Assembly (NCBI GenBank): GCA_002269645.1
Contig: NIVC01000215.1
Location: 62,001-126,000, forward strand
Direction of reading: 5' to 3'
Source: Macrostomum lignano
Lineage: Eukaryota
Length of the DNA: 64,000 bases
The position numbers and the translations under genes were made by a program. Below, piece by piece: positions 938 through 64,000 of this stretch. The first letter of the stretch is position 1, and each line of letters opens with the position of its first letter. Under the pieces are notes generated by a model, which had not been told where the DNA came from, made no database searches, and saw nothing but the letters and a program-made list of their open reading frames with translations.

Positions 938-3900
938 GCAGCAGTAGTAGTAGTAGTAGCAGTAGTAGTAGCAGCAGTATTAGTAGCAGCAGTAGTAGTA
1001 GTACTTGTGTAGTAGTAGCAGATGTGATAATACTCGGCAGAATAAATAATAATTTGTGTTTTTGCAATTATCAGTAGTAATCAAACCAGAAGCACAAGAA
1101 ACTAATATTACAATTCAGAAGAAGATTTTGCATGTGCTGAAAAGCCTGCACTGGCTGTATAGTTTAAAATGGATCCCGATAACAGCTCTCGCCTAATCCA
1201 ATCCCTGTCTTTCAAGATTCCCGACCTACCCGGCGGAATTTCCGTCGTTTGCGGCGGCTTCGGACGCAATGTGAGTTTTTATGCGCTTTTCTACATAAAA
1301 TAGTCAAGTTGGTTCGCGGGGGGCGGGCAAATCAGCTCAGCGTAAAACGCGCCATGATCCCTGGTTCGATTCCCACATTTATTTGGGGCTTGTGTGCACG
1401 GATATTGGGCTGGGGAGGGGGTTTGTCGTGCGGTTCACAGCCATGAGGGCCAGCCCCCAAGGCACAGAGTGCACATGCCTGACGATTAGAAAGTCAGGGC
1501 CGCTGTACACCCCGTGTGAGCGGTGTATGAGTGCATGCCCGCGTCCTTATTTAATTTCTAGGGTTGCAGCCTAGTGGTTAGAGAGTCGGACTCCCGACTG
1601 GAAGGTCGGGGGTTCGATTCTCGACCCACTCGGAACAGTTTGTGTCCTTGAGCAAGACACTTAACTCTGCATTGCTTCAGTTCACCCAGCTGTAAAATGA
1701 GTGCCAGCATCAGCTGGGGTAATTGAGGCTGTGTGTGGCGATCCCCCAGTCCTTGGACTGAACAGCCGTACGCAGCCTTCAGATGCGCCGCGCCATAGCT
1801 GCGGCTGAGCTGTCGGTTGCACATCTCGGGCCATTAGGGCAGGTGAAATCAATTATTATTATTATTATGCCTGCGTACAGCATTTCTCATAATATAGTGG
1901 CTGTACCATTACGCTCTGTCCTATCGTCGGGGACGCACACTCCGTTGAACACCAGGCACTTTCGCACTGTAACTTCGTCTATAAAACCCCCAATTTGCAG
2001 CACATATTCGCCACCCAAGACCAGGACAATTTAATCAAAGCAATTAAAGAGGCGGCGCAGCACTACATTGGACTGCAAATTCGGGTGCACCAAAGCCAGA
2101 GCACCTACGAGCAGTTGCTAATTAACAAGTTCGGCAAATACTCTGGCGACGAGCACCTGACCTCGCACAGCGAATTCCCAGTTGCTAAGACGCGGACGCC
2201 GAGGCACAAGTAAAACAATACACGATTTTAACTAATGTGCTCTAGGCCGTTGCAATGTACACTGGCTCTGACCCCCACCCCAACTGTACACCCAGACCCC
2301 CACCCCAACTGTACACCCAGACCCGTACCCCAACTGTACACCCAGACCCCCACCCTAACTGTACACCCAGACCCGTACCCCAACTGTACACCCAGACCCG
2401 CACCCCCAGACCCCACCCTAACATTACACAGTGGCCAATGGTTTTCAACGCCATCCCCGTTCTCAGAGAGCCTGTCAGGCGGCTGCTGTGCCTGTCCGAG
2501 ACCTGCCTAATCGAGCGAGATCCGGCCACCTATCATGCAGTGTCCGTCAAGCCGCTCTGCGATGTGTTCTCAATGACCAGAGACCCGGCCAATCCCCAAC
2601 TAGTGGCCATCGAGAGCGTCCGCGGCCCGCCCCGCTATTACACCAGCACCGATCGGGACGCCCTCATCGCCTCCGTGCTGGACGGAGTTCGCGCATCCGG
2701 CAATCGTGACGTGTGCGTTAAACGGGCACCGATCGATCGGGGACTGCGGTTTGGTCCGTTGAGCACGCCGCTATCTGAGGAGGTTGAGAGCCAATGCCTC
2801 CGGCATCTCTATCAGCAACCGCCTGGCGTCACCTTTGCTCAGGCGAGTTGTTGCTTTAGTTTTACTCAACTTGGTTCTTCAATAGGCCGCTCTTTGGGCC
2901 TTCAATAGGCCACTCTTTGTTCCTCCAATGGGCCGCTCTTTGTTCCTTCAATAGGCCGCTCTTTGTTCCTCTAATGGGCTGCTCTTTGTTCCTCCAATGG
3001 GCCGCTCTTTGTTCCTTCATAGGCCGCCCTTTGTTCCTCTAATGGGCTGCTCTTTGTTCCTCCAATGGGCCGCTCTTTGGTTCTTCTATAGGCCGCTCTT
3101 TGTTCCTCCAATGAATCGCTCTTTGGTCTTTCAATAGGCCACTCTTTGGTCCTTCAATGGGCCGCTCTTTGGTCCTTCAATGGGCCGCTCTTTGATCCTT
3201 CAATAGGCCGCTCTTTGGTCCTTCAATAGGCCGCTCTTTGTTCCTCCAATGAATCGCTCTTTGGTCTTTCAATAGGCCACTCTTTGGTCCTTCAATGGGC
3301 CGCTCTTTGGTCCTTCAATGGGCCGCTCTTTGATCCTTCAATAGGCCGCTCTTTGTTCCTCTAATGGGCTGCTCTTTGTTCCTCCAATGGGCCGCTCTTT
3401 GTTCCTTCATAGGCCGCCCTTTGTTCCTCTAATGGGCTGCCCTTTGTTCCTCCAATGGGCCGCTCTTTGGTTCTTCTATAGGCCGCTCTTTGTTCCTCCA
3501 ATGAATCGCTCTTTGGTCTTTCAATAGGCCACTCTTTGGTCCTTCAATGGGCCGCTCTTTGGTCCTTCAATGGGCCGCTCTTTGATCCTTCAATAGGCCG
3601 CTCTTTGGTCCTTCAATAGGCCGCTCTTTGTTCCTCTAATGGGGTGCTCTTTGTTTCTCCAATGGGCCGCTCTTTGGTTCTTCTATAGGCCGCTCTTTGT
3701 TCCTTCAATGGGGTGCTCTTTGGTCCTTCAATGGGCCGCTCTTTGGTCCTTCAATGGGCTGCTCTTTGGTCCTTCAATGGGCCGCTCTTTGGTTCTTCAA
3801 TAGGCCGCTCTTTGGTCCTTCAATATGCCGCTGCCAACCCCTTGACTCAAGAGTCTATCATTGTCTCAACAATCACCAACGCGCTGCAAACCGCAGGCGG

Positions 3901-6900: not shown

Positions 6901-9900
6901 GACCTTCAGGTAGCTGCTCAACATTCTAGACCTTCAGGTAGCTGCTCAACATTCTAGACCTTCAGGTAGCTGCTAAACATTCTAGACCTTCAGGTAGCTG
7001 CTCAACATTCTAGACCTTCAGGTAGCTGCTGAACATTCTAGACCTTCAGGTAGCTGCTGAACATTCTAGACCTTCAGGTAGCTGCTCAACATTCTAGACC
7101 TTCAGGTAGCTGCTAAACATTCTAGACCTTCAGGTAGCTGCTGAACATTCTAGACCTTCAGGTAGCTGCTGAATATTCTAGACCTTCAGGTAGCTGCTCA
7201 ACATTCTAGACCTTCAGGTAGCTGCTGAACATTCTAGACCTTCAGGTAGCTGCTCAACATTCTAGACCTTCAGGTAGCTGCTGAATATTCTAGACCTTCA
7301 GGTAGCTGCTCAACATTCTAGACCTTCAGGTAGCTGCTGAACATTCTAGACCTTCAGGTAGCTGCTGAACATTCTAGACCTTCAGGTAGCTGCTGAACAT
7401 TCTAGACCTTCAGGTAGCTGCTGAATATTCTAGACCTTCAGGTAGCTGCTCAACATTCTAGACCTTCAGGTAGCTGCTGAACATTCTAGACCTTCAGGTA
7501 GCTGCTCAACATTCTAGACCTTCAGGTAGCTGCTCAACATTCTAGACCTTCAGGTAGCTGCTGAATATTCTATACCTTCAGGTAGCTGCTCAACATTCTA
7601 GACCTTCAGGTAGCTGCTCAACATTCTAGACCTTCAGGTAGCTGCTAAACATTCTAGACCTTCAGGTAGCTGCTCAACATTCTAGACCTTCAGGTAGCTG
7701 CTCAACATTCTAGACCTTCAGGTAGCTGCTGAATATTCTAGACCTTCAGGTAGCTGCTCAACATTCTAGACCTTCAGGTAGCTGCTGAACATTCTAGACC
7801 TTCAGGTAGCTGCTGAACATTCTAGACCTTCAGGTAGCTGCTGAACATTCTAGACCTTCAGGTAGCTGCTCAACATTCTAGACCTTCAGGTAGCTGCTGA
7901 ACATTCTAGACCTTCAGGTAGCTGCTCAACATTCTAGACCTTCAGGTAGCTGCTGAATATTCTAGACCTTCAGGTAGCTGCTCAACATTCTAGACCTTCA
8001 GGTAGCTGCTGAACATTCTAGACCTTCAGGTAGCTGCTGAACATTCTAGACCTTCAGGTAGCTGCTCAACATTCTAGACCTTCAGGTAGCTGCTCAACAT
8101 TCTAGACCTTCAGGTAGCTGCTAAACATTCTAGACCTTCAGGTAGCTGCTGAACATTCTAGACCTTCAGGTAGCTGCTCAACATTCTAGACCTTCAGGTA
8201 GCTGCTGAATATTCTAGACCTTCAGGTAGCTGCTCAACATTCTAGACCTTCAGGTAGCTGCTCAACATTCTAGACCTTCAGGTAGCTGCTGAATATTCTA
8301 GACCTTCAGGTAGCTGCTCAACATTCTAGACCTTCAGGTAGCTGCTCAACATTCTAGACCTTCAGGTAGCTGCTGAACATTCTAGACCTTCAGGTAGCTG
8401 CTGAACATTCTAGACCTTCAGGTAGCTGCTCAACATTCTAGACCTTCAGGTAGCTGTGAACATTCTAGACCTTCAGGTAGCTGCTGAATATTCTAGACCT
8501 TCAGGTAGCTGCTCAACATTCTAGACCTTCAGGTAGCTGCTCAACATTCTAGACCTTCAGGTAGCTGCTCAACATTCTAGACCTTCAGGTAGCTGCTCAA
8601 CATTCTAGACCTTCAGGTAGCTGCTAAACATTCTAGACCTTCAGGTAGCTGCTGAATATTCTAGACCTTCAGGTAGCTGCTCAACATTCTAGACCTTCAG
8701 ATAGCTGCTGAACATTCTAGACCTTCAGGTAGCTGCTCAACATTCTAGACCTTCAGGTAGCTGCTAAACATTCTAGACCTTCAGGTAGCTGCTGAATATT
8801 CTAGACCTTCAGGTAGCTGCTAAACATTCTAGACCTTCAGGTAGCTGCTGAATATTCTAGACCTTCAGGTAGCTGCTCAACATTCTAGACCTTCAGGTAG
8901 CTGCTCAACATTCTAGACCTTCAGGTAGCTGCTCAACATTCTAGACCTTCAGGTAGCTGCTCAACATTCTAGACCTTCAGGTAGCTGCTAAACATTCTAG
9001 ACCTTCAGGTAGCTGCTAAACATTCTAGACCTTCAGGTAGCTGCTGAACATTCTAGACCTTCAGGTAGCTGCTGCTACTCAAAGGCACTCTGATTGTTTT
9101 TTTACCTCAACTGTACTTTCAGCTTCCAGTTCTTCAACGATCTTTATCACCGGTTTCTGCTGACGCAAAAAGTGAACATGAAATGCATGTGCCTTCACGC
9201 CATGACCATCGTGTACGGCCGGTGCCACGCTGAGATCGGGCCGTTCGGAGACACTCGCTACATTGTTAGCATGCTGGATAGGGTGAGGAAATCAGAGCAC
9301 TCGCTCCCAATGTAATCCCAATCGCATTGTGCTGCTGATTCGAATGCATTAGTTTCATTGTTTCAACACTTCAGACCACTGACAAGCTGGAGCGGGATCG
9401 ACTCATGCTGTTTCTTAGTCGACTCGTGCTCAACAAGGTCTGTGCCATTTCTTTCATTTAGTAAAACTATACCTTCAGTGCATTGCCGCTATCCTCTCCC
9501 TGATCCTTCAGTGCATTGCCGCTATCCTCTCCCTGATCCTTCAGTGCATTGCCGCTATCCTCTCCCTGATCATTCAGTGCATTGCCGCTATCCTCTCCCT
9601 GATCATTCAGTGCATTGCCGCTATCCTCTCCCTGATCCTTCAGTGCATTGCCGCTATCCTCTCCCTGATCCTTCAGTGCATTGCCGCTATCCTCTCCCTG
9701 ATCATTCAGTGCATTGCCGCTATCCTCTCCCTGATCATTCAGTGCATTGCCGCTATCCTCTCCCTGATCCTTCAGTGCATTGCCGCTATCCTCTCCCTGA
9801 TCCTTCAGTGCATTGCCGCTATCCTCTCCCTGATCCTTCAGTGCATTGCCGCTATCCTCTCCCTGATCCTTCAGTGCATTGCCGCTACCCTCCCCGGATC

Positions 9901-10509
9901 GCCGCTACCCTCCCCGGATCGCCGCTACCCTCCCCGGATCGCCGCTACCCTCCCCGGATCGCCGCTACCCTCCCCGGATCGCCGCTACCCTGAGCTTCTC
10001 AATTATGTTTATTTCCCACAGGAAAACGTCAAGGAGATTCTGGACGCAAACGGTGTGAAAATCATTATCGACTTTGTAACCCTGGCGCATCTGCACATTT
10101 CTCGAGCGCACACCCCGATGCAAGTGAGTCAGTCTACTAGTAATTTATGGCATTCAATGAGTCTATCAATCATCATCCTATCTAACTCTGCAAACCCGTT
10201 TCCTCCAGTCGAACATCCTTGAAGCCAGTCCGGACATGCGCCGGCCGGGCGAGAAGGAGTGGTACTACGGCAGCTCGGCCAAGGAGAAGTGCGGCCCCTT
10301 CAGCTTTGACGAGCTCAAGGAGCTCTTCGAAAATGGCAGCGTTAATAAGGACACTCGGGTCTGGGCGCAGGGCTTCGAGGGCTGGAAACCTCTGGCTTCC
10401 GTGCCGCAGCTGCGCTGGACCCTGCTGGCTACTGGCAAAGAGGTGAGCACTGGCTGACTGACTGACTGACTGACTGACTGACTGGCTGGCTGGCTCACTG
10501 ACTGACTGA

Positions 10510-13500: not shown

Positions 13501-16500
13501 TAATGGGGCACTGATCCCCTGCTCTGTGTCATGCTTCTGTTAATGGGGCACTGATACCCCCTGCTCTGTGTCATGCTTCTGTTAATGGGGCACTGATATC
13601 CCCTGCTCTGTGTCATGCTTCTGTTAATGGGGCACTGATATCCCCTGCTCTGTGTCATGCTTCTGTTAATGGGACACTGATACCCCTGCTCTGTGTCATG
13701 CTTCTGTTAATGGGACACTGATACCCCCTGCTCTGTGTCATGCTTCTGTTAATGGGACACTGATACCCCCTGCTCTGTGTCATGCTTCTGTTAATGGGAC
13801 ACTGATACCCCCTGCTCTGTGTCATGCTTCTGTTAATGGGGCACTGATATCCCCTGCTCTGTGTCATGCTTCTGTTAATGGGACACTGATCCCCTGCTCT
13901 GTGTCATGCTTCTGTTAATGGGACACTGATACCCCTGCTCTGTGTCATGCTTCTGTTAATGGGGCACTGATATCCCCTGCTCTGTGTCATGCTTTTGTTA
14001 ATGGGACACTGATACCCCCTGCTCTGTGTCATGCTTCTGTTAATGGGACACTGATACCCCCTGCTCTGTGTCATGCTTCTGTTAATGGGGCACTGATATC
14101 CCCTGCTCTGTGTCATGCTTCTGTTAATGGGACACTGATCCCCTGCTCTGTGTCATGCTTCTGTTAATGGGACACTGATACCCCCTGCTCTGTGTCATGC
14201 TTCTGTTAATGGGGCACTGATATCCCCTGCTCTGTGTCATGCTTTTGTTAATGGGACACTGATACCCCCTGCTCTGTGTCATGCTTCTGTTAATGGGACA
14301 CTGATATCCCCTGCTCTGTGTCATGCTTCTGTTAATGGGACACTGATATCCCCTGCTCTGTGTCATGTTTCTGTTAATGGGGCACTGATATCCCCTGCTC
14401 TGTGTCATGCTTCTGTTAATGGGACACTGATACCCCCATGATATTTAACATAAAGTTATGAAATGGGGAAATATCAAGCCTAGAAATATTGCTCAAAATT
14501 ATTGCATTGGACAATTTTGTTTCCTCAAGCGCAATTCTGCAGACACCATGTACATTTATTACTGTAAAGTGCATAATAGTGCAACGATATCAGATATTTA
14601 AGCCATGTTGAAGTTGAATCACTGCACGCAAAAGTGAAGTCAACAGGCCATGAAATACAGTTGCGTGTTTCAGCCTTTGGCAAGAGAGGAGATATTACAT
14701 GTAGATAGCTGTCATATGCCTGAACACACCCTCACGTATGTAATCTGGCATGTCATTAAGTGTACATTTCTAATGCTTGGGCATAAAGTTGCCCTGGGCA
14801 ATGTACATGACTGTTGCCTCCTCTATCTGTTTGTCTCTCCCTACCCCCTCTCCTGTGGTGCCCTGTCAAACTGTTAATGTTGTAAGTTAAGTTAAAATGT
14901 TTTTAATTTTTCTACTCTAACTGGTTACTGTGTTCTAATATAGTATAATAAATTAGGGTAAAGTGTAACTGTTCCTTAGCTTAGTTGGTGAACAATGTTA
15001 AGCTGAGGAATTGTTTTCGCCAGCTCGAATCTTCACCAGCTCGAAGCTTCACCAGCTCGAAGCTTCACCAGCTCGAATCTTCACCAGCTCGAATCTTCAC
15101 CAGCTCGAATCTTCACCAGCTCGAATCTTCACCAGCTCGAAGCTTCACCAGCTCGAATCTTCACCAGCTCGAATCTTCACAAGCTCGAATCTTCACAATG
15201 TGAAACAATGTCAAGCTGAGGAATTGTTTTCGCCAGCTCGAATCTTCACCAGCTCGAAGCTTCACCAGCTCGAAGCTTCACATGCTCGAATCTTCACCAG
15301 CTCGAATCTTCACCAGCTCGAAGCTTCACCAGCTCGAAGCTTCACATGCTTAAAACTTCACAAGCTCGAATCTTCACAAGCTCGAAACTCCACAAGCTCG
15401 AATCTTCACAAGCTCGAATCTTCACAAGCTCGAATCTTCACAAGCTCGAATCTTCACAAGCTTAAAACTTCACCAGCTCGAAACTTCACAAGCTCGAAAC
15501 TTCACAAGCTCGAATCTTCACAAGCTCGAAGCTTCACATGCTTAAAACTTCACAAGCTCGAAACTTCACCAGCTCGAAACTTCACAAGCTCGAAGCTTCA
15601 CATGCTTAAAACTTCACAAGCTCGAATCTTCACAAGCTCAAATCTTCACGAGCTCGAATCTTCACAAGCTCGAAGCTTCACATGCTTAAAACTTCACAAG
15701 CTCGAATCGTCACGAGCTCGAAACTTAACAAATTAGAAATTTTCACAAACTTGATACGCTGCCTGTTTCCATTATAGAAGCGATGTACTTTAAAAATATC
15801 TGCGCAAAAGTACACAATGATATTTTTATTTTTCCGTTCTTTTATCGTTTTGCAAACTAAGGACTTAATTTTCATTTAAAATGTTGTGAAACCTTTTTGC
15901 GTTAATATCCTTAGGGTTCTACTCAGTAGTATAACTAGCTGGTTAATAATTTATCCGCCCAGGCCGGTCACAGTCTGATGCAGCAGTCGGTGCTTGGCCA
16001 CCTGCTACCCGAGGCCATGGTCTGCTACTTAGAGAACTATACGCCGGAAAAATTTGCCGAAATATTTCTGGGCGAATTCGACACGCCTGAGGCGATCTGG
16101 AATTCCGAGATGCGCCGTCTCATGATTAGCAAAATTGCCGCCCACCTGGCCGACTTCTCGCCCCGGCTGCAGTCTAATACGAGAGCTCTGTACCAGTACT
16201 GCGCCATCCCTCGGGTGCAGTATCCTCAGCTTGAGAATGAGCTATTCTGCAATATCTATTACCTGCGCCACCTGTGCGACACTGCCAGATTTCCCGATTG
16301 GCCAATCAAAGAGCCAATCGCTTTGCTCAAAGACATTTTAGAGGCTTGGAAACGCGAAGTTGAGAAACGGCCGCCAACGATGAGTTTAGAGGAGGCCTAC
16401 AGCGAATTGGGGCTGACTAGCAAGGATGGAGCGTGAGTGGCTACTAGTAGTAAAAATGCTAGCGTTCTTTTGCTTAGTTTGTCGGCTATTAGGTAACGGA

Positions 16501-19292
16501 ACTTTGGCTTCCAGGGACTTAGGAAATCACATATTAGGCGCTTAGGTAATCACATATTAGGCGCTTAGGTAATCACATATTAGGCGCTTAAGAAATCACA
16601 AATTAGGCGCTTAGGAAATCACAAATTAGGCGCTCAGAAATCACAAATTAGGCGCTTAGGAAATCACAAATTAGGCCGCTTAGGAAATCACAAATTAGGC
16701 GCTTAAGACATCACATATTAGGTACTTAGGAAATAACAAATTAGATGCTTAAGAAATCACAAATTAGGCCGCTTAGGAAATCACAAATTAGGCGCTTAAG
16801 AAATCACAATTAGGCGCTTAGGAAATCACAAATTAGGCCGCTTAGGAAATCACAAATTAGGCCGCTTAGGAAATCACAAATTAAGGCCGGTTAAGAAATA
16901 GATATTAGACGCTTAGGAAGCAGATATTAGACGCTTGGAAAATAGATATTAAACGTTTGGGAAATAGATATTAGAGGCTTGGGAAATAGATATTAGACGC
17001 TTGGGAAATAGATATTAGACGCTTGGGAAACAGATATTAAACGCTTGGGAAATAGATATTAGACGCTTGGGAAATAGATATTAGACGCTTGGGAAATAGA
17101 TATTAGACGCTTGGGAAATAGATATTAGACGCTTGGGAAATAGATATTAGACGCTTGGGAAATAGATATTAGACGCTTGGGAAATAGATATTAGACGCTT
17201 GGGAAACAGATATTAGACGCTTGGGAAACTCAACTCGGAATATAGCTTTTTCTAGTTGCGAGACAATTGAGAACTGTCAAACAAGAGCGAATCAAATCCC
17301 CAAATTCGGTGTCCCATTCAGCCCAGACGAGGCGCAGATCCGGAAGAGCTACTTCCGTTTAGCCCAGAAATATCATCCGGACAAAAACCCGGACGGCCGA
17401 GAGAAATTTGAATCGGTCAACAAGGCCTACGAATTTTTGTGCAGCAAAGCCAACCTCGTGCAGGGCCCCGACCCCAAGAATATTGTGCTCATCCTGCGGT
17501 CCCAGAGCATTCTGTTCAGCCGGTACAAGGATTGTAAGTGCTGTGCCTGTGTAGTGTGCATACAGCCTGTGTCACTCCATGTAGTGTGCATACAGCCTGT
17601 GTCACTCCATGTAGTGTGCATACAGCCTGTGTCACTCCATGTGGTGTGCATACAGCCTGTGTCACTCCATGTAGTGTGCATACAGCCTGTGTCACTCCAT
17701 GTAGTGTGCATACAGCCTGTGTCACTACATGTAGTGTGCATGCAGCCTGTGTCACTCCATGTAGTGTGCATGCAGCCTGTGTCACTCCATGTAGTGTGCA
17801 TACAGCCTGTGTCACTCCATGTAGTGTACATACAGCCTGTGTCACTCCATGTAGTGTGCATACAGCCTGTGTCACTCCATGTAGTGTGCATACAGCCTGT
17901 GTCACTCCATGTAGTGTGCATGCAGCCTGTGTCACTCCGTGTAGTGTGCATACAGCCTGTGTCACTCCATGTAGTGTGCATACAGCCTGTGTCACTCCAT
18001 GTAGTGTACATACAGCCTGTGTCACTCCATGTAGTGTGCATACAGCCTGTGTCACTCCATGTAGTGTGCATACAGCCTGTGTCACTCCATGTAGTGTACA
18101 TACAGCCTGTGTCACTCCATGTAGTGTGCATACAGCCTGTGTCACTCCATGTAGTGTGCATACAGCCTGTGTCACTCCATGTAGTGTACATACAGCCTGT
18201 GTCACTCCATGTAGTGTGCATACAGCCTGTGTCACTCCATGTAGTGTGCATACAGCCTGTGTCACTCCATGTGTGCATACAGCCTGAGTCATTCCCTGTA
18301 GTGTACATACAGCCTGAGTCATTCCCTGTAATGTACATGCAGCCTGTGTCAGATTCCCTGTAATGTACATACAGCCTGTGTCAGATTCCCTGTCATGTAC
18401 AGCCTGTGTCAGATTCTCTGTCATGTACATACAGCCTGTGTCTTGTTCCCTGTAATGTACATACAGCCTGAGTCAGATTCCCTGTAATGTACATACAGCC
18501 TGAGTCAGATTCCCTGTAATGTACATACAGCCTGAGTCATATTCCCTGTAATGTACATACAGCCTGAGTCAGATTCCCTGTAATGTACATACAGCCTGAG
18601 TCATATTCCCTGTAATGTACATACAGCCTGAGTCATATTCCCTGTAATGTACATACAGCCTGTGTCATATTCCCTGTCATGGTAAAAACAAAGCCTGTCA
18701 TCAGCTGATCCCCTCCAAACCCCAAGCCAGCCGGACACCCCAACTCTCCCTCCCGCCCGCAGTGCTGCAGCCCTACAAGTACGCCGGCTATCCGGCACTC
18801 ATTAAAACGGTCCGCATGGAGACCTCAGAGGATCAGCTGTTCTCCAAAGAGGTGCCCCTGCTAGAGTCTGCCGCCGAGCTCTGCTACCACACTGTCAACT
18901 GCTCGAATCTTAACGCCGAGGAGTTGCGTCGCGAGAACGGCATCGAGGCCCTGCAGGAGGCCTTCTCCCGTTGCGTCTCCGTGATAACGCCCGGCTCGAA
19001 ACCCGACGAGACTCCAGCCAGAGTTTGTGTCAATATTCTGCGCTGTTTCACCGTTGCCGCCAAGTTTGAAGCCTGCCGATCGAGGATTCAAGAGCAGCCT
19101 CAGATTGTCAAGGATCTGCTGCGGGTTATGTACTTTAAGCACCTGCCCCGGCTGGCTACAGTGGCCGTTGAGTGCGCCGCAGGTCTGTTGCTGTGGTGAT
19201 GCTAGTAGTGGTACTAGTAGTAGTAGTACCAGTAGTAGTAGTAGTAGCAGTAGTAGTAGTAGTAGTAGCAGTAGTAGTAGTACCAGTAGTAC

Positions 19293-19646: not shown

Positions 19647-22600
19647 CAGTAGCAGTAGTATTAGTAGTAGTAGTAGTAGTAGTAGTAGCAGTAGTATTAG
19701 TAGTAGCAGTAGTAGTGGTAGTAGAAGTAGTAGCAGTAGTAGTACTAGTGGCAGTAGTAGTACTAGTAGCAGTAGTAGTAGTAATAGGAGAGGTAGTCGT
19801 CGTTTTTGTTCATGTAGTTTTGATTTACTTTAATTGAATAGTAAGTACTAAAATAAGCATTATAATCTACACAGAATAGTTATAGTAGCCAGTTATCATA
19901 CAGAGCAGCGCACTCTTATTGCAACCAACTGATACAAACCCGCCCCCCTCAGCCTTCTGCCTGGACTTCTGGCTGCAGACGAACATGTACCAGTCTGGCG
20001 CGCTTTACCACCTGCTGCCGCTGCTATTCGGCTACGACTACACCCTGGACGAGGGCGGCGTTGAACGGGCGGAGGACAGCAACCAGCAGGAGCAGAACAA
20101 CCGCTTGGCCGAGGCCGCCCTCAGGGCCTGCTCCGCCCTGGCCGGCTATCGTGCCGTCGCCACCTCCCCGACAGTGGCCGTAGCGGTCGACTCTGGCGAG
20201 CCTGGCCGAGCCGAGGCCTCAGACGACGTCCCCGCAGTGGCCGCAGACGCGAGCAACAGCAGCAGCGACGGCGGCGCCTGCTATCCAGACAATCCGTCAG
20301 TGCAGCAGTCGCTGAAGGCTCTGGTCACGCCGTTTGTTTGCCGCCGAATGCAGGACCAGCGGCCAGGCTGGCTGCTGAAGCTGCTGAATTCCAATTGCCA
20401 GACGCCATATTTAATCTGGGACAATGCGACCAGGGCCGAACTGTTGGGCTATCTGGAGGACCAGCAGCAGAGTCTGATTCGCACTGTGAGTGGGGCCTCT
20501 GCAACTGGGCCAAGCAACTGGGCCTGAGATTAGAGCTGTTAGTTGGTTTGTTTGTTAAGTCACCCCTAAACCAGACTGAGAATCGCCCCTAAACCAGACT
20601 GAGAATCACCCCTAAACCAGACTGAGAATCACCCCTAAACCAGACTGAGAATCACCCCTAAACCAGACTGAGAATCGTCCCTAAACCAGACTGAGAATCG
20701 CCCTAAACCAGACTGAGAATCACCCTAAACCAGACTGAGAATCGCCCCTAAACCAGACTGAGAATCGCCCCTAAACCAGACTGAGAATCACCCCTAAACC
20801 ATCCTGAGAATCACCCCTAAACCATCCTGAGAATCACCCCTAAACCAGACTGAGAATCGCCCCTAAACCAGACTGAGAATCGCCCCTAAACCATCCTGAG
20901 AATCGCCCCTAAACCAGACTGAGAATCGCCCCTAAACCAGACTGAGAATCGCCCCTAAACCAGACTGAGAATCGTCCCTAAACCAGACTGAGAATCGCCC
21001 CTAAACCAGACTGAGAATCGCCCCTAAACCAGACTGAGAATCGCCCTAAACCAGACTGAGAATCGCCCCTAAACCAGACTGAGAATCGCCCCTAAACCAG
21101 ACTGAGAATCGCCCTAAACCAGACTGAGAATCGTCCCTAAACCAGACTGAGAATCGTCCCTAAACCAGACTGAGAATCGCCCTAAACCAGACTGAGAATC
21201 ACCCTAAACCAGACTGAGAATCGCCCCTAAACCAGACTGAGAATCGCCCCTAAACCAGACTGAGAATCGCCCCTAAATCATCCTGAGAATCGCCCCTAAA
21301 CCAGACTGAGAATCGCCCCTAAACCATCCTGAGAATCGCCCCTAAACCAGACTGAGAATCGCCCCTAAACCATCCTGAGAATCACCCCTAAACCAGACTG
21401 AGAATCGTCCCTAAACCAGACTGAGAATCGCCCCTAAACCAGACTGAGAATCGCCCCTAAACCATCCTGAGAATCACCCCTAAACCAGACTGAGAATCGC
21501 CCCTAAACCATCCTGAGAATCACCCCTAAACCAGACTGAGAATCGCCCCTAAGCCAGACTGAGAATCGCCCCTAAACCAGACTGAGAATCACCCCCAAAC
21601 CAGACCGAGAATCGCCCCAAACCAGACCGAGAATCGCCCCTAAACCAGACTGAGAATCGCCCCTAAACCAGACTGAGAATCGTCCCTAAACCATCCTGAG
21701 AATCGCCCCTAAACCAGACTGAGAATCGCCCCTAAACCATCCTGAGAATCGCCCCTAAACCAGACTGAGAATCGCCCCTAAACCATCCTGAGAATCACCC
21801 CTAAACCAGACTGAGAATCGCCCCTAAACCAGACTGAGAATCGCCCCTAAACCAGACTGAGAATCGCCCCTAAACCATCCTGAGAATCACCCCTAAACCA
21901 GACTGAGAATCGCCCCTAAACCATCCTGAGAATCACCCCTAAACCAGACTGAGAATCGCCCCTAAGCCAGACTGAGAATCGCCCCTAAACCAGACTGAGA
22001 ATCACCCCCAAACCAGACCGAGAATCGCCCCAAACCAGACCGAGAATCGCCCCAAACCAGACCGAGAATCGCCCCAAACCAGACCGAGAATCGCCCCAAA
22101 CCAGACCGAGAATCGCCCCAAACCAGACCGAGAATCGCCCCAAACCAGACCGAGAATCGCCCCAAACCAGACCGAGAATCGCCGCAAACCAGCCCCATAG
22201 ACTGAATTCGTGTTTGACCTTCCAGGGCGAGTGCGACCAATCGCTGGGCACCGAGTTCCAGTACAGCATCTTCGGCAAGGAGCTCATCATCGGAGACGTT
22301 TTCATTCGAGTGTACAATGAGCAGCCGACTTATCCGCTGGAGGTAACCATTGGATGGGGAATCTTCACCTTTTCTTTCCTGTGCTTCAGTGACCATATCT
22401 ACACATTTCAGTGCTTCAGTGACCTTCTCTACACATCTCAGTGCTTCAGTGACCATATCTACACATTTCAGTGCTTCGGTGACCATATCTACACATTTCA
22501 GTGCTTCAGTGACCATATCTACACATTTCAGTGCTTCAGTGACCTTCTTTACACATCTCAGTGCTTCAGTGACCTTCTCTACACATCTCAGTGCTTCAGT

Positions 22601-24089
22601 GACCTTCTCTACACATCTCAGTGCTTCAGTGACCTTCTCTACACATCTCAGTGCTTCAGTGACCTTCTCTACACTTCTCAGTGCTTCAGTGACCTTCTCT
22701 ACACATCTCAGTGCTTCAGTGACCATATCTACACATTTCAGTGCTTCAGTGACCATATCTACACATCTCAGTGCTTCAGTGACCATATCTACACATTTCA
22801 GTGCTTCAGTGACCTTCTCTACACATCTCAGTGCTTCAGTGACCTTCTCTACACATCTCAGTGCTTCAGTGACCATATCTACACATTTCAGTGCTTCAGT
22901 GACCTTCTCTACACATCTCAGTGCTTCAGTGACCATATCTACACATTTCAGTGCTTCAGTGACCATATCTACACATTTCAGTGCTTCAGTGACCATATCT
23001 ACACATTTCAGTGCTTCAGTGACCATATCTACACATTTCAGTGCTTCAGTGACCTTCTCTACACATCTCAGTGCTTCAGTGACCTTCTCTACACATCTCA
23101 GTGCTTCAGTGACCTTCTCTACACATCTCAGTGCTTCAGTGACCTTCTCTACACATCTCAGTGCTTCAGTGACCTTCTCTACACATCTCAGTGCTTCAGT
23201 GACCTCTACACATCTCAGTGCTTCAGTGACCTTCTCTACACATTTCAGTGCTTCAGTGACCTTCTCTACACATCTCAGTGCTTCAGTGACCATATCTACA
23301 CATTTCAGTGCTTCAGTGACCATATCTACACATTTCAGTGCTTCAGTGACCATATCTACACATTTCAGTGCTTCAGTGACCATATCTACACATTTCAGTG
23401 CTTCAGTGACCATATCTACACATTTCAGTGCTTCAGTGACCTTCTCTACACATCTCAGTGCTTCAGTGACCTTTTCTACACATCTCAGTGCTTCAGTGAC
23501 CATATCTACACATTTCAGTGCTTCAGTGACCATATCTACACATTTCAGTGCTTCAGTGACCATATCTACACATTTCAGTGCTTCAGTGACCATATCTACA
23601 CATTTCAGTGCTTCAGTGACCTTCTCTACACATCTCAGTGCTTCAGTGACCTTCTCTACACATCCCAGTGCTTCAGTGACCTTCTCTACACATCCCAGTG
23701 CTTCAGTGACCTTCTCTACACATCTCAGTGCTTTAGTGACCTCCACGCATCCCAATGGGCCACCCAAACTCCCGTCTGATACCGCAGAATCCCAAAGGCT
23801 TGACCATAGACATTCTGCACTACCTGAACACGAGCGCCCAGTACCTGCACTCGCTGCTGGCAATGCAGCGGGACCAGCAGGAGACGTTGATTCTCAACGA
23901 CGACCAGCGGCGCAACCTCACTAAAGTTGACGCCGCGCTTGAGGCTCTGCGCAACGTTATTAGAAATCACCCGGGGGTTGAGATGCAGTGCATCGGCTAC
24001 TTCCAGCTGCTGTTCGCCCTGCTCAGGCTCAACGGCTGTCACACCACCATGCAGAGGGCGCTTGAGGTGAGCCGATGGTCTGAGGGACT

Positions 24090-33596: not shown

Positions 33597-36148
33597 CAGT
33601 TGCTGCTGCAGGGGCTGTTGCTGGTGCAGACAGTCAGACGAGTCAGACAGCACAGCCGCGGCCAGACCTGTCCGGCCCAGGTAGGGAAATTTATTGCAGT
33701 CACTCAGGCAGGGATCATTGTTGGATAGAAAGCTGGACTTGCTGCCCACTGGCGGTCTCTGCGCTATGGGCTGCAGGCTGCGGGATGTTGCCATGTTTTT
33801 GCCATTTTTTTGCATTCTTGCACGGAAATCCTTTGTGAGTATCATAGATGCTTTCTCGGAATCGCAGGTGAGCAGCTCAATATCATTCACAGAAATCCAA
33901 GGTGAACAGCTCAATATCATTCACAGAAATCCAAGGTGAACAGCTCAATATCATTCACAGAGATTCAAGGTGAACAGCTCAATATCATTCACAGAGATTC
34001 AAGGTGAACAGCTCAATATCATTCACAGAGATTCAAGGTGAACAGCTCAATATCATTCACAGAGATTCAAGGTGAACAGCTCAATGTCATTCACAGAGAT
34101 TCAAGGTGAACAGCTCAATATCATTCACAGAGATTTAAGGTGAACAGCTCAATATCATTCACAGAGATTCAAGGTGAACAGCTCAATGTCATTCACAGGG
34201 ATCCCAGGCAAAGCGCTCTCAACCAGAGATGAAGAAGGAAGTCTCCAGTGACTCACCGGTCAGTTGGCCGGAGCTGCTGCTGCTTCTTTTGCTGCTCAAT
34301 GGCTGGCGGAGGCTTCAGCGCCACCTCAAAGAGTTTCCTCTGCAGGCACTCGCTCGGATCCAAGTTGAGCACCGTTCGAATCGGCGGTTTAAGCGGGCCG
34401 CCCGCCGCGCACCGGTTTCTAAACGGGGAACTGCCGGTTAGGCCTGTGGGTAAATTGCGGACAGATGAAGAAGCACGCATGAGAGAAAAAATGTTTCTTC
34501 AGGTCCTTGGTTGCAGTTAAAAATCAGTTTGATAAGCTTTTGCCCATTAGGCCGAAAAATACGCGCAAAGTCTACTAAAAGTAGGATGGGCAATCAGGTT
34601 CGCTCTTCTTACCCAGCTCGGAGACGTCGTCGACGCTACGGTGCAGAGCCAGCCGCGGCAGCAGTGTGGCCGGACTGTAGCTGGCTTCGTCCGGCTCCTG
34701 CCACATCGACTTGGGAAGGTGGCGGCTTCGCATGGGAACGCTGGCGGCTACTGGGGCCACGGACGGAAGCTGCTGCTGCTGCTGAAGAAGGGCGCGCTTC
34801 TCCTTCAGACGGCCGCCGCCTATCCAGTTCAATTCGGAGAAGTTTTTGCGAAAGAGAATGCATTGATTTGTTTACTTTAATAAGTAAGCAGGGCAGGATG
34901 GAGCTGGACACTGCAGGGACAGCTGATGGAGGACACTGCAGGGACAGCTGATGGAGGACACTGCAGGGACAGCTGATGGAGGACACTGCAGGGACAGCTG
35001 ATGGAGGACACTGCAGGGACAGCTGATGGAGGACATTGCAGGGACAGCTGATGGAGGACACTGCAGGGACAGCTGATGGAGGACATTGCAGGGACAGCTG
35101 ATGGAGGACACTGTAGGGACAGCTGATGGAGGACATTGCAGGGACAGCTGATGGAGGACACTGCAGGGACAGCTGATGGAGGACACTGCAGGGACAGCTG
35201 ATGGAGGACATTGCAGGGACATCTGATGGAGGACATTGCAGGGACATCTGATGGAGGACACTGCAGGGACATCTGATGGAGGACACTGCAGGGACAGCTG
35301 ATGGAGGACATTGCAGGGACAGCTGATGGAGGACACTGTAGGGACATCTGATGGAGGACATTGCAAGGACAGCTGATGGAGGACATTGCAGGGACAGCTG
35401 ATGGAGGACACTGTAGGGACAGCTGATGGAGGACACTGCAGGGACATCTGATGGAGGACACTGTAGGGACAGCTGATGGAGGACATTGCAGGGACAGCTG
35501 ATGGAAGACACTGCAGGGACAGCTGATGGAGGACATTGCAGGGACATCTGATGGAGGACACTGTAGGGACAGCTGATGGAGGACACTGCAGGGACATCTG
35601 ATGGAGGACACTGCAGGGACATCTGATGGAGGACATTGCAGGGACATCTGATGGAGGACACTGCAGGGACATCTGATGGAGGACACTGCAGGGACATCTG
35701 ATGGAGGACACTGCAGGGACATCTGATGGAGGACACTGCAGGGACAGCTGATGGAGGACACTGTAGGGACAGCTGATGGAGGACACTGCAGGGACATCTG
35801 ATGAAAGACACAAAATAAAAAAGTCTGGAATCTTCCGTCACCTGCTCTGTGCTGCTGCACCGGGTGAGCGTGCGCATGGTCCAGGAAGCCCGGCGCCCGA
35901 CGGTAAACCTGGCAGGTGGAGGAGGCGCAGCTGCTGGTGTCCTCGGCGCTGTCGTCATCCGAGGAGCTGGTCCTCAGCGGCTGATTTGCTCGCCTACGTC
36001 GCCCGGACGAGCCGCCGGACGAGGAGTCCGTTGACGCCGACGAGATGCACGGCGTCCCTAGGCCGGAATCCGGCTCTGGCGGCGCTGCCTTGGTGTTGAT
36101 TGGCACCAGGGTGCTCTTGCGGCCACCGCCAAATGGCCTGCTTGCCAT
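33513..36148 (-). CDS. Predicted 4-exon gene, about 334-aa low-complexity (S/Q/R-rich) protein of unknown function
   Basis: Exons 36148-35842, 34819-34613, 34443-34257, 33816-33513 are joined by GT-AG introns with matching phases (1,1,2) into a stop-free 1005-nt ORF; no recognisable domain; true start uncertain. Confidence 0.55.
33866..34200. repeat. 34-bp intronic minisatellite (gtgaacagctcaatatcattcacagagattcaag)
   Basis: About 10 copies. Confidence 0.93.
34906..35803. repeat. 25-bp intronic minisatellite (gacactgcagggacagctgatggag)
   Basis: About 36 copies. Confidence 0.95.
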
Positions 36149-40384: not shown

Positions 40385-40805
40385 GGAGACAATGTGTCTC
40401 CTCTCGCTTAATGCTAGGAGCCTTGGCCAGACAGGACAGGTGAAAGCCAATAAGAGTTGAGAGTCATTGCTGAGCGGCCTTCGTCCCGACTTTCATAAAG
40501 CGTCTGAATTTGACAGTATTTCAAACTGCTCGCATTCTCTTCTTGCTTTGGCCGGGGCAGCTCAGTGTCTAAAATTTGCAACAGTGAGCAGCGGCAAATA
40601 CCTTTGCATTACTCCCCAATCATCCATTGTTTTCAGCTCGAGACTGGGACATCGCCACGCGACGTGAGTGTTGGCTCCTGTGTTCTGCACCTGTTCACAA
40701 CTGATTTTGCTTCTTAAAAGCTGTAATCTCAACTTACAGAGCTCGCATCGCCCTATTTTGTAATCCGTAGGTTGATTCAAACCAAAGCCAAGCATAACAA
40801 CAGTG

Positions 40806-41354
40806 ATGCGGGGTTCTGCCATCCTTCGAGCTGGCCTCTGCCTGATACTCTCTGCTGCGTTGGTCACCGCGTCAGCTGAAGCAGCCGAAGCCACTTCGGC
40901 CAGACACGCTGACCATGGCGGCCTGCAACGGCACGAGGCGCCTGTTGAAGCGGCGACTGTAGCAGCGTCTGATGACGAACGAATGCTTGGCGAGGAGAGC
41001 GACGCTGCTGAGATGGAGATGCCGGATCACGACGCTTTGAAAGAGGACAAGCGTGCTCCATTCTGGAAGCGGGCTCCATTCTGGAAGCGGGATCCATTCT
41101 GGAAGCGGGCTCCATTCTGGAAGCGTGCTCCTTTCTGGAAGCGGGCTCCATTCTGGAAGCGGGCTCCATTCTGGAAGCGTGCTCCATTCTGGAAGCGGCT
41201 CCATTCTGGAAGCGTGCTCCATTCTGGAAGCGGGCTCCATTCTGGAAGCGTGCTCCATTCTGGAAGCGGGCTCCATTCTGGAAGCGTGCTCCATTCTGGA
41301 AGCGGGATCCTTTCTGGAAGAAGCGCACTCCGTTCTAGAAAAAAGTCGCAGTGA
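40806..41354 (+). CDS. Secreted neuropeptide precursor with tandem KR-flanked APFW/DPFW peptides
   Basis: ATG 40806, signal-peptide-like MRGSAILRAGLCLILSAALVTASAEA, acidic spacer, then 8 KR-[A/D]PFW units. A 1-nt deletion at about 41198 shifts the frame; if restored, 7 more units and KKR-TPF-stop (41338) follow. AATAAA at about 41458. Confidence 0.85.
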   Translation: MRGSAILRAGLCLILSAALVTASAEAAEATSARHADHGGLQRHEAPVEAATVAASDDERMLGEESDAAEMEMPDHDALKEDKRAPFWKRAPFWKRDPFWKRAPFWKRAPFWKRAPFWKRAPFWKRAPFWKRLHSGSVLHSGSGLHSGSVLHSGSGLHSGSVLHSGSGILSGRSALRSRKKSQ

Positions 41355-42829
41355 TAACCACCCAGAATGAGACATGACTGCATGGCAAAAGCAATTTACA
41401 GCAAAGTTATTGACTGGCCTACTATGTTGTTGGTTCACTTGACGCAATTTGGCTTTAAATAAATAGACAGAAGCATAAAGGACAGCTTTTTTCCTATAAA
41501 CAGATGGACGGTCACAGCCAAAATGGCTAAAAATACTCGCATTTGATTTGCAGTTATTTGCGCTCGTTCGTTAGTTGCTGATTAGTGAATACTACAATTT
41601 AGACGTGTTCGAGACGTCCTACTGTAGTTCGAAAGCTCCCTACCTCCCTTCGCAAGCCACAGACATGGATCTCTCCATCGAATTCGTAAAATTTTATTGG
41701 AACTCACGGCAGACCGCTCGCTGAGAATGTCTATGGCCAAAGGACCGTTCTCAACGCACCCCAATTCAAATTTTCGAAAAAAAGCAATCGATCAAGCATC
41801 GTCTGATAAAGCCGCCAGTGTAGCAAGTTTAGAAAGTGTGCACAGCTACACAAGCCGGACTCAAGTTACTCGGCATGCAACATTATTATGAAAGACTAAG
41901 CAAACAGGACAGATTGATACTGATCAAAGCTAAAGTCGGCAAAAGAAGCATTTCGTATTAGTGAGGATCTCGGATCCGACACGCGAGGTAGAAACCTTGC
42001 CAGATCTTGTCTGTTTTTTCGCGACGTCTTTGTTGGCCTATCGAAAAATATACTTGGCTGTGACGCCATCACACGAACTTAGTGGACTATAATTGTCTAT
42101 TTTGCCTAGCTTATGTTGCCCCCCCCACACGGCACAATGTCCTAAGACAGGAAACGGAAACAGAGAGAACTCCGAATTAGACAGATCGGGAGAAATAGAT
42201 TAGCTGAATATAAGCCGAACTGGCTGCTTTTAGGCTGAATTAGACAGATTGCACGCCGAATTAGGCTGAGTTGGAGCTAACAGCGGTAGGTACAGGATGC
42301 CTATGAAATGAGACAGGCCCTCGAGCTGCAGTCTGGGATGTTTTACACCTGCTCAACCTCTTTTTTAGAGCAGGCGTGGCTGGAGATTTAATCTCCACGC
42401 TCAGCGCTGGTCACCCTTCCGAAGTTTTCGGCCTTTGGCAATATGCTGCAAAAGGTACGGGCTATCCGCCCTATTGGAATAAGTGTAAAAAACCTGCGGA
42501 CACGCGACACGGGGTCTAAAATTGTAGCTCAAAAACGCGACGCGACACAGAACATATTAACTTTCGCACCGAATACAGGCGTAGTACTAATTAGATGACG
42601 AGGCATGTAGCCTCAATAAGACTGTTAAGTTACTCTTACGGTTTATTCAAAAACTGCAACGCGCCGCGACATCACCTGCCTTGACTGCAGCCGCGACGCG
42701 ACACTGGAAAATTACGAAATTGCGACGGACGGTTGGACGCCTTTTGTCCACTTATTCCGGTGCACTTACCCTACTTGTGCGTGATCAGGTGCCTCTGGCT
42801 ACGGCTCTGAGATAGAGGTGATACCCTTT

Positions 42830-61412: not shown

Positions 61413-64000
61413 CTAAGACTCCTCTGAAGTCTTCTGCTTCAGCCGGTTGATGTAGGCCAGCCTCTGGGCAACAACTTCCCGTTTGCGCCGGGCATTCTCC
61501 AGCTTTCGACGGCGCGCCAGCTGTCGCATGTCGTCGACTTCGCGGTATCGATCCTCCAGTTTCTTTCCTGGCGGCGGCGGCGGCGGCAGCCTCGGCGCTC
61601 TGAGCTGCCTCTGCACCTCGGGCTCGCCAGTCTGCTTATTGACGTCGGTCTCGTAGAAAAAGTTGAAGTCCTGGGCGAAGTAGAAAGCGTCGTAATCTTC
61701 GCAAGCATTGTTGTAGTCCCAGTAGAGCGGCAGGCCCATTAGGCTCTTGTAGAAGCACTCCACTGTGATGCCTAAAGACTCCTGAATGATGCTGGACATT
61801 ATTTGCCGCTGCCTGGGTGCCACGGTCAACAGTCCGGAGAAGATCTTTGTGCCAGCCTCTAGAATCCACAGTTTGTTGCGCGCGTCAACCAGCGAGTCAA
61901 TGGACACAGTCTGGAACGTTCCGGGATAGTCTTGAACAACCGGCTGCATGTAGTCCATGATGCACTGGGAGGCGAACAGCATCTGTATGTAAATAGACTT
62001 GGAGTTCAGGCATTTAGCTGGCAGGACATCCTCAATGTAGAAAACATTGTCTTCGTCCATCTCCATCATGGATGCCCGGCCATATTTAATTTCTTCCTTG
62101 ATCATAGTCAGGACGTTCGGGTCGCGATAGTTCGACAAATGCGATTGTCGGCTAAACCGCTCGGTCAGGACGCGTCCGACAGTCCGATTGGCGATCGGGA
62201 TTTTCAGGTTCGGCTCTTTGCCCTCCAGCGCCTCCTCCTCGGGCGGGAAGTCCTCGCGATTCACCTGATTGTTTGAAATGAAAATTAAATCAAACAAATG
62301 GGTGCTACGAGTAAGCGCCTTCGAATAACTTTATAAATCTGCAAAACGGACTGCTCGCCAAAGTATGGAAGCCACGTGATTGAAACAACCTACAAGGCAT
62401 GAAAGCCACGTGAATAAAACAATATGCAAAGCATGGAAGCCAAGTCGCTGAAGCAACCATAAGGCATGGAAGGTATGACACTAAAACAGCCTGAAAAGTA
62501 AGTTTAAAATGGCTCGGCTCGATAGAAAATCAAACGCTAGCCGAGGAGGCCAGCTGGAAAAATAAACTGACTGACCTGCTGGTAGGGCAAAAGGCAGAAT
62601 ATGGCCAATCCGTAATGAATAAAACCGATGACGCGGCGCCTTGGCAGCACGATAATCAGTAGGAAGAATCGAATAGTGAATTTGCTGTGGTCAAACAGTC
62701 TTGGGCACTCGATGTACCGCTGCAGTATAACGCCGTGCCTGCTGGTTGATTTTCCATCCAGCATGTGATAGAAGCACTCAAACTGTTTGACATCAACTAG
62801 GAAGTTGATACCGCGACCGTTGCAAAGATAAGCAGGCTTAGTGATGAAGATGGTACCTTTTAGATCTTCGACACGGTGGAAGCGTTCAATAAAGTGCAAC
62901 ATAGAGACGTAAGAGTTGATAGTAATAGTCTCCGGTATGAATGCGTACAGGTGCTCGCACACAGGAAGCTTATAGTTAGGACAGTTCGGCACCAAGCAAG
63001 GCTTCAGAGAAAGCGACAAGTTCTGGTGGACGCAAATTCGCCTGGTTACGGAGCGATTCGCTTCGAGATCTAAGCACGATACGTTGGCGTTGTCGCCACA
63101 AAATCGCATCTCACTAGGCTGGGTCTTGCAGGTGAGAGACGGGCTGAGTACGTAGCCCTTCAGCATGTAGTAGAAAGCCTCCTTATCGCTGAAGAAGACG
63201 TCAATGGCTAGTCGATTGATTAAGTAGAAATCTTCGTCAACGGACCGAGTGCCGGCTAGCATGTAGGACCTGCTCGGGTCGTTGACTATGCAGAGCTCGT
63301 TGAGCATCTTCTTAGCCAGACAGGGTCCCAGCCAGAGCAGCGCGATGCTCGATTTCTTTGACGACACATTTCTGTCCAGCATCTCCTTCGATAAACTCCA
63401 GTCGAACACCTTCTCCATGAACAGCTCAACAATGCGATACACTGGCCCGCTTGATCGAAACTTTCTCCGCTTTCGACTGTCCAGCACTAGCAAATTCAGC
63501 AGAGTGTCCGGGTCCGTGCGCGGGTCAATGTAGTTCTTCCAGTCCTTTTCTATGTAGTACCGGCCGTAGTTGATCATGCCGCGCAGCGGTCGCACTTCCG
63601 TAACTTGTTTCAGTAACTTCATTCTATCGTAGCGACAACTGCCAAAGAACGGCAAGTGGTCCAGGCTCTTGTCAAGGTCCTTCTGCTTCTTCGTGCGGTT
63701 CAACGGCGGTTGCCATGTTTTAATCAGCTTTCTTTCCGACTTTCTCCGCGAATGCAATTTGCCTTCGCCCGGCCGGCGAATCCTCGGCGGCAGCGGCTCG
63801 GCCAGCGCGTCGTTCAACAGGCTCTTGCACTTGACGCCGCTTGTTAAGCGAACCTTGCGCACCTCCGGGTCCTCGCTGATTAGGCGCATCTGGGTTAGCT
63901 TGTCGATGCCACCGGTTGGCGGAAGCAGCTGCAGTGGCACCGTACCGTGCATCGGGTCGGTCGAGATGCTGCAGCTCTGCTCCACGGCCTTGCCGCCGCA
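61413..64000 (-). CDS. Divergent tubulin-tyrosine-ligase-like (TTLL, ATP-grasp) protein, 3' part; exons window end-62576 and 62264-61413
   Basis: FITKPAYLCNGRGI, ILQRYIECPRL, KFTIRFFLLI, FCLLPY, SHLSNY, SIDSLVDARNKLWILEAG map onto TTL motifs (WIxKP..GxGI, QKYI, KFDxR, HLTN, FDxxxDxxxxxWLLEVN); cag|gtcagt...aatcag|gtg phase-0 intron; ORF open at the window edge. Confidence 0.8.

Follow-up and report, generated by a model that had tools for sequence, protein, structure and literature searches.

A predicted multi-copy precursor of non-amidated Phe-Trp peptides in Macrostomum lignano and its tapeworm relatives

Peptide signalling in flatworms has been only partly catalogued, and mostly for the amidated peptides of planarians and parasites. 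Among the described systems closest to the locus reported here, the achatin-like precursors of molluscs and annelids carry multiple non-amidated tetrapeptides of the form G-[F/Y]-x-D, which are flanked by Lys-Arg (KR) and act via a G-protein-coupled receptor; the activity of achatin depends on the L-to-D isomerization of residue 2. The APGWamide precursors of molluscs and annelids contain seven-residue units, APGW-G-KR, in which the Gly gives the amide. In planarians, Smed-cpp-1 encodes VPGW-G and TPGW-G (Collins 2010 supplement). Flatworm precursors of non-amidated peptides have also been catalogued, including npp-26 (xFDPI[LI][FY]-OH), Npp 43 (ATLAYF/ASLAYF) and Npp 29 (KR-MLYW-KR) (PMC9495596; PMC11196405). 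We analyzed a candidate peptide gene in a 64-kb stretch of the genome of the flatworm Macrostomum lignano, hereafter the window, in which an 18-nucleotide (nt) unit encoding KR and a tetrapeptide, APFW or DPFW, is repeated in tandem.

Judged by its sequence, the locus is a real, small, single-exon (intronless) gene of M. lignano, and its predicted precursor belongs to an unnamed flatworm family, here termed 'FW peptide', that extends from Macrostomorpha to Cestoda. We estimate the probability that the products of the precursor are intercellular signalling peptides, whether neuropeptides or a peptide hormone, at about 0.65.

Organization and reading frame of the gene

The precursor open reading frame (ORF), read from its ATG and with one G restored as described below, spans positions 40806-41338 of the forward strand, exactly as in the original prediction. 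It starts with MRGSAILRAGLCLILSAALVTASA, which has basic residues (Arg) at positions 2 and 8, a hydrophobic core of 14 residues at approximately positions 9-22 (maximal Kyte-Doolittle 11-residue mean of 2.6) and, after this core, the signal-cleavage-type motif A-S-A followed by E. According to this heuristic, which combines the hydrophobicity profile with the AXA motif, the N-terminus is predicted to be a signal peptide. The acidic spacer that follows comprises 57 residues, has a net charge of −13 and contains no internal dibasic site. By contrast, the repeat region has a net charge of +31. Tandem Repeats Finder (TRF) described the array with a period of 18, 15.2 copies, 92% matches and a score of 467, and unit-by-unit parsing resolved it into 15 units of 18 nt, 13 of which encode KR-APFW and two of which, units 3 and 15, encode KR-DPFW. 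The array ends with AAG AAG CGC ACT CCG TTC TAG, corresponding to KKR-TPF-stop, with the stop codon at 41336-41338. The dibasic sites, 15 KR and one KKR, are spaced by exactly six residues, and Gly precedes KR in none of the 15 units. Overall, these data bear out the originally predicted signal peptide, acidic pro-region and 18-nt units. The predicted tally of 13 APFW, two DPFW and a terminal TPF was likewise reproduced once the G was restored, and the units are exactly KR-xPFW, with the KR sites and the missing amidation Gly that had been proposed. An AATAAA sequence occurs 120 nt past the restored stop codon and is the only one within 560 nt downstream. No further copies of the peptide gene were found within the window.

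Arg codons CGT and CGG alternate perfectly over units 8-15 (41175-41317), forming a 36-nt higher-order repeat. This alternation suggests that unit pairs were recently duplicated and that the array expanded by unequal exchange; its copy number may be polymorphic.

Upstream of the ATG, a consensus-like splice donor at 40664 (cgac/GTGAGT) and an acceptor with its end at 40739 (cttacAG) lie 76 nt apart. This segment could represent a short intron in the 5′ untranslated region or, alternatively, a trans-splice acceptor. Many M. lignano mRNAs are trans-spliced (PMC5730564).

In the assembled sequence, the reading frame is broken in unit 9, which has 17 nt: AAGCGG-CTCC as compared to AAGCGGGCTCC. The as-assembled ORF of 182 residues (GCA_002269645.1, contig NIVC01000215.1, M. 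lignano assembly Mlig_3_7) accordingly runs out of frame after eight peptides and continues as an LHSGS... tail to its end at 41354. With the frame restored, the six units past the break are free of defects and the stop codon is in place, for which reason the break probably reflects either an error of assembly or a lesion of very recent date. The Mlig_3_7 assembly was built by Canu from PacBio data, with Pilon polishing based on Illumina and RNA-seq reads (PMC5730564). A one-base homopolymer deletion in a 270-bp tandem array would be the type of error that such a pipeline leaves: the missing base belongs to a G homopolymer, in which PacBio consensus errors would be typical, and short reads would not be uniquely placeable in the array. 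If the 1-nt deletion were instead real, this copy would be a pseudogene, a decaying duplicate in a neopolyploid genome. The break is indeed present in the assembly despite polishing with Illumina and RNA-seq reads, and M. lignano is described as a neopolyploid with duplicated loci (PMC10733133). Nevertheless, the intact sequence past the break implies that any lesion is very recent, and even with a real break the truncated ORF would yield a signal peptide, a spacer and eight KR-flanked peptides. We give the pseudogene explanation only a small chance.

A non-coding 18-bp minisatellite that is open by chance in one frame would also produce such an array. On both strands, several reading frames run through the repeat without a stop. 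Moreover, the 92% identity of the units leaves little information in the variation within the array: three sites vary, two of them synonymously (CGT/CGG and CCA/CCT) and one exchanging Ala for Asp (GCT/GAT), and 12 of the 54 possible single-base changes per unit are synonymous. Third-position variation had originally been taken as a sign of coding selection. With so few variable sites the argument from within the array is weak by itself, but selection at the level of the peptide is supported by the comparison between species described below. The minisatellite explanation does not account for the in-frame ATG with its signal peptide and acidic spacer just upstream of the array, nor for the stop codon directly behind the last unit. 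The coding interpretation rests on these features, on the AATAAA downstream and, above all, on homologous precursors with other codon usage in at least six other sources. We therefore reject the minisatellite, to which we assign a negligible probability.

Relatives in tapeworms and a metagenome

To search for relatives, we used the frame-repaired protein, which yielded two relevant matches: P0001, from a metagenome, and P0002, from the tapeworm Dibothriocephalus latus. P0003 was discarded as a low-complexity chance match. P0001 is a protein of 104 residues encoded by a single small exon on a 660-bp, AT-rich metagenome contig (GC content of 0.31). It has a signal peptide and the KR-separated units QFW, APFW, DPFW, EAFW, APFW, EAFW, EPFW and EAFW. 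P0002 is an 'unnamed protein product' whose gene model, VDK82978.1, merges two tandem FW-precursor genes over 5.5 kb. Gene 1 encodes a signal peptide and, after an assembly gap, ...MEEQDLAEILKR-SPHFW-KR-YHAFW-KR-SPAFW-KR-SAFW-KR-APFW-stop. Gene 2, which begins a further 5.5 kb along the contig, shares this layout but has degenerate cleavage sites (KQ, KH and KL) and one F-G replacing F-W, and looks like a decaying or diverging duplicate.

A search from P0002 identified clean orthologues in Schistocephalus solidus (P0004 and P0005, two copies on one contig), D. latus (P0006) and Spirometra (P0007). In each, a signal peptide and an acidic spacer are followed by KR-SPHFW, KR-(Y/S)H(A/S)FW, KR-SPAFW, KR-SAFW and KR-ASFW, the last peptide being the C-terminus. 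A profile search added P0013, from a Logan assembly, with ARFW, APQNSFW, ANFW, GGGGLGNSAFW and VNFW-stop, and the final profile search added TsM_000200800 of Taenia solium, with ...SPFW, SDFW, YGNQAFW and ENFW-stop. The latter is encoded by one small exon and shares 49% identity with P0013 over a region that takes in some of the spacer. The N-termini of all these homologues are equivalent to that of the Macrostomum protein. When the profile was run exhaustively with HMMER against 1.84 billion representative proteins, only 20 matches reached E ≤ 1e-3. The best five, with E ≤ 1e-10, were P0006, P0007, P0002, P0001 and P0008, a precursor whose peptides end in FY; the FW-type proteins among the 20 were P0006, P0007, P0002, P0001 and P0013. 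Scans of JGI metagenomes, using patterns derived from the profile and the degenerate DNA pattern FW-KR-[A/D/E]PFW-KR, gave no match, and Pfam and PDB sequence searches with the precursor returned nothing meaningful.

The relatives bear the database names 'unnamed protein product', 'hypothetical protein' and 'RxLR effector protein'. The last of these, which UniRef attaches to S. solidus P0004 and P0005, refers to an oomycete effector class and is evidently an automatic misannotation based on the signal peptide and R-x-L-R-like strings.

The invariant feature of the family is Phe-Trp followed directly by KR, KRR or a stop codon, without Gly. More specifically, the peptides conform to x0-9-[P/A/S/N/D/H/R]-F-W, in which the residue before FW is small or polar and the N-terminal extension ranges from one to approximately nine residues. 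All 15 Macrostomum units fit this formula, as do 4-7 units in each of P0001, P0004-P0007, P0013 and P0035. The 'AP' start is specific to Macrostomum and P0001, F-W being the family-wide core. Units are separated by KR or KRR in every intact member, the exceptions being the first unit of P0001 and of T. solium (GK or RK) and D. latus gene 2.

To evaluate homology across this range, we compared a profile built from tapeworm sequences only (A3) with the other proteins. It matched the Macrostomum protein with an hhalign probability of 98.6% (E of 8.5e-16), the match lying only in the repeat region, and P0001 with a probability of 97.7%. Between tapeworm genera, identity was 92% in the peptide region, 61% in the spacer and 70% in the signal peptide; the higher conservation of peptides than of spacer is, at the sequence level, the classic prohormone pattern. 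The Macrostomum unit, AAG CGG GCT/GAT CCA TTC TGG, differs from that of P0001, AAA AGA GCA/GAT CCN TTT TGG, at 5-6 of 18 nt, and all of these differences are synonymous. Both the Ala and the Asp isoform are kept in the two precursors. The copy number varies, with 15 units in Macrostomum versus 4-7 elsewhere.

The family had been predicted to be undescribed or lineage-specific. It is shared with tapeworms and hence not confined to Macrostomum, but it has no name in public databases or in the searchable literature. The parasitic-flatworm catalogue of Koziol et al. 2016 reportedly analyzed D. latum, S. solidus and T. solium. It is unlikely, though by no means far-fetched, that the tapeworm genes already carry an npp number there. 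The searchable full-text literature yielded no relevant paper on these FW peptides or on TsM_000200800, and no neuropeptide catalogue of Macrostomum. The planarian catalogue, numbered to npp-28, yielded no FW-KR precursor, and the only entries retrieved were npp-12 (NYF-G) and cpp-1 (xPGW-G) (Collins 2010). Similarly, FW precursors are absent from the 30 orthologues of Koziol 2016 families in Taenia crassiceps (PMC11196405), npp-32.1, 38 and 39 being outside this comparison. The descriptions of the Macrostomum precursor as a 'neuropeptide' precursor and as 'new' are each probable. The broader hypothesis is that the FW peptides, with their free C-terminal Trp, represent an uncatalogued, ancient family of flatworm neuropeptides that predates the split between Macrostomorpha and Neodermata and is maybe related to the precursors of APFY and AAFY in other invertebrate transcriptomes. 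We advance it tentatively, as having slightly less than an even chance of being correct.

Predicted processing, role and genomic context

In the proposed pathway, signal peptidase would remove approximately 24 residues of the precursor, a convertase of the furin/PC2 type would cut after each Lys-Arg, and an enzyme of the carboxypeptidase E/D type would trim the basic residues. Each precursor would thereby release about 13 APFW, two DPFW, one TPF and the acidic propeptide, or eight tetrapeptides if the break in unit 9 is real. The precursor itself is expected to lack an ordered structure. Because no Gly precedes KR, the peptides would not be amidated and would have a free C-terminal Trp carboxylate. 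Their computed monoisotopic [M+H]+ values are 520.2554 (APFW), 564.2453 (DPFW) and 364.1867 (TPF). The X-Pro N-terminus would shield them from general aminopeptidases but might make them substrates of a DPP-IV-type enzyme. The peptides would then act outside the cell, as neuropeptides or a peptide hormone, on a receptor.

The architecture of the precursor does not fix the cell type in which it is expressed, and the product could be secreted but non-neuronal. It might be an exocrine peptide, such as a pheromone or a defensive or antimicrobial peptide (AMP), for which C. elegans nlp-type AMPs and amphibian skin peptides provide cases for comparison, or a cationic repeat polypeptide, rich in Trp and Pro, that stays uncleaved and has a charge-neutralizing acidic propiece. 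A signal peptide, an acidic propiece and a basic repeat region also fit the precursors of host-defence peptides, and copy numbers as unequal as those among FW precursors are frequent for exocrine products. However, the KR-trimmed peptides would be neutral or acidic and of 4-11 residues, which is not AMP-like. Further, the peptides are conserved position by position from one tapeworm genus to another, the KR/KRR sites (KKR before the Macrostomum TPF) are strictly regular in every intact member, and the occurrence of the family in a free-living marine worm as well as in endoparasites argues for endogenous signalling. On the basis of this peptide-by-peptide conservation, distribution and regularity of cleavage sites, we favor a role in intercellular signalling and consider a non-neuronal secreted product rather improbable.

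Several observations weigh against this interpretation. The Macrostomum gene is known from genome sequence alone. Its assembled sequence has a frameshift, which could mean that this paralogue of a neopolyploid genome has recently been disabled. That expression is neuronal and not glandular is assumed by analogy. The spacers of the Macrostomum and tapeworm precursors do not align convincingly, so that homology rests on short units and a shared architecture and convergence formally retains some chance. Finally, no family members were found in the predicted proteins of Schistosoma, Echinococcus, Hymenolepis or planarians, and no Macrostomum protein of the FW-precursor kind was found in the protein collections searched.

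The family spans from a free-living basal flatworm to tapeworms that infect humans (T. solium, Dibothriocephalus and Spirometra), and its predicted peptides are unusually short and non-amidated. If the signalling interpretation is correct, they would add a set of ligands that can be tried on orphan receptors of flatworms. M. lignano is amenable to transgenesis (PMC5730564) and, with RNA interference expected to be usable, would be a natural place to find the function of the FW peptides; their tapeworm orthologues would be parasite-specific signalling targets. Small genes of this kind are left as 'hypothetical protein' or mislabelled in databases. Lineage-restricted, neuropeptide-like precursors are regularly found, and the present one is a useful annotation and a lead rather than a surprise.

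The coordinates of the gene, of the tandem D. latus genes and of other features of the window are summarized in Table 1. The neighbouring exons belong to ordinary metazoan genes that are not obviously connected with the peptide gene. Two GC-rich stretches probably correspond to low-complexity or repeat-derived sequence, and an Rfam scan of the window found no RNA family.

Table 1. Features of the M. lignano window and the tandem FW genes of D. latus
Feature	Position	Strand	Basis or remark
Start codon and predicted signal peptide (residues 1-24, MRGSAILRAGLCLILSAALVTASA; predicted cleavage between ASA and EA)	40806..40877	+	sequence, hydrophobicity, AXA motif; cleavage site inferred
Acidic pro-region/spacer	40878..41048	+	position and character same in tapeworm and metagenome homologues
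Array, 15 units of KR + tetrapeptide	41049..41317	+	TRF, unit parse
17-nt unit 9, one G of GGG run missing	41193..41209	+	unit parse
Terminal KKR-TPF and TAG (restored frame)	41318..41338	+	unit parse
AATAAA polyadenylation-type signal	41458..41463	+	sequence scan
RME-8 N-terminal exon	2255-2908	+	long exon
DnaJ domain, then Cys-rich repeat (Keratin_B2-like matches)	17221-18363	+	long exon
GC-rich stretch, open in 2-3 overlapping frames (423-633 residues)	21962-23924	both	spurious Pfam matches only
GC-rich stretch, open in 2-3 overlapping frames (423-633 residues)	34636-36148	-	spurious Pfam matches only
LRR_8 protein, 802 residues	51999-54407	-	long exon
Tubulin-tyrosine-ligase-like (TTL) exon	62537-63985	-	long exon
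D. latus tandem FW genes	UYRU01043596.1 (L002) 9787-10132 and 15346-15669		contig read

Comparison with known precursor systems

APFW had been likened to molluscan and annelid APGWamide, and the precursors do share a signal peptide, many KR-separated tetrapeptides whose second residue is Pro and whose fourth is Trp, and a spiralian origin. We considered whether the spiralian APGWamide (cerebral peptide/RGWamide) precursor has a divergent orthologue in the Macrostomum gene, one that lost the amidation Gly and replaced Gly3 with Phe. Consistent with such an origin, a mixed family profile matched molluscan APGWamide precursors with E values of 5.5e-9 to 1e-3. By contrast, the tapeworm-only profile yielded an hhalign probability of 22.9% on the Haliotis APGWamide prepropeptide, as compared to 98.6% on the Macrostomum protein. 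The Macrostomum unit has six residues and would release a free acid; Phe occupies the position of Gly3 in every unit, so that the P-G-W core of APGWamide is absent and F-W is conserved in its place. The amidation Gly is missing from every unit throughout the family, and the tapeworm peptides do not begin with A-P (SPHFW, YHAFW, SAFW, ENFW). The Cys-containing C-terminal part of the molluscan precursors is absent as well, and Smed-cpp-1 indicates that flatworms have a separate APGWamide-type gene. Based on the two profile probabilities and this separate xPGW-Gly gene, the sequences indicate that the Macrostomum precursor is not an APGWamide orthologue. The resemblance appears to be superficial, and orthology is very unlikely.

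The FW precursors resemble achatin-like precursors in having multiple KR-flanked, non-amidated tetrapeptides. However, the motifs are unrelated, residue 2 of the FW peptides being Pro, Ala or Ser, and no search that we made revealed homology to achatin-like precursors. The repeat proteins of fungi that are processed by Kex2, such as yeast alpha-factor, also combine a signal, a pro-region and short tandem peptides that a kexin-family protease releases at KR. They belong to another kingdom, have no sequence similarity to the FW precursors and are a mechanistic analogue only.

The catalogued flatworm precursors npp-26, Npp 43 and Npp 29 are likewise small and flatworm-restricted. Their peptides are short, not amidated and end in an aromatic residue, and in some cases the last one lies at the C-terminus of the precursor. 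These precursors carry one to a few peptides, as compared to the 15 near-identical copies in Macrostomum. Npp 29 and Npp 43 look most like the FW precursors among the T. crassiceps orthologues, but no sequence relation to either was detectable (BLASTP E of 0.12; hhalign probability of 0.1%).

Among the proteins matched by the profile was also P0023, an 'uncharacterized protein' of the acoel Convolutriloba macropyga (XP_075259639.1) with a signal peptide and approximately 14 KR-flanked pentapeptides, PSEFL, PSGFM and PSTFI, without Gly. From its sequence, it is another unnamed, non-amidated, multi-copy precursor.

The best matches of the HMMER profile outside the family were P0008 (571 residues, E of 2e-23; L005-L007, Logan SRR22428377/79/80) and P0011 (472 residues, E of 1.5e-8), which contain KR-APFY, AAFY and ALFY units together with many ...LS(S/A)FY-KR units. 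As in the FW precursors, their peptides are KR-flanked and non-amidated, and the last one is C-terminal; APFY differs from APFW in having Tyr for Trp. Both derive from RNA-seq runs, are longer and encode longer peptides, and P0008 has a Cys-rich N-terminal domain. Given these similarities in sequence, the FY-ending precursors may represent a sister family in another invertebrate group.

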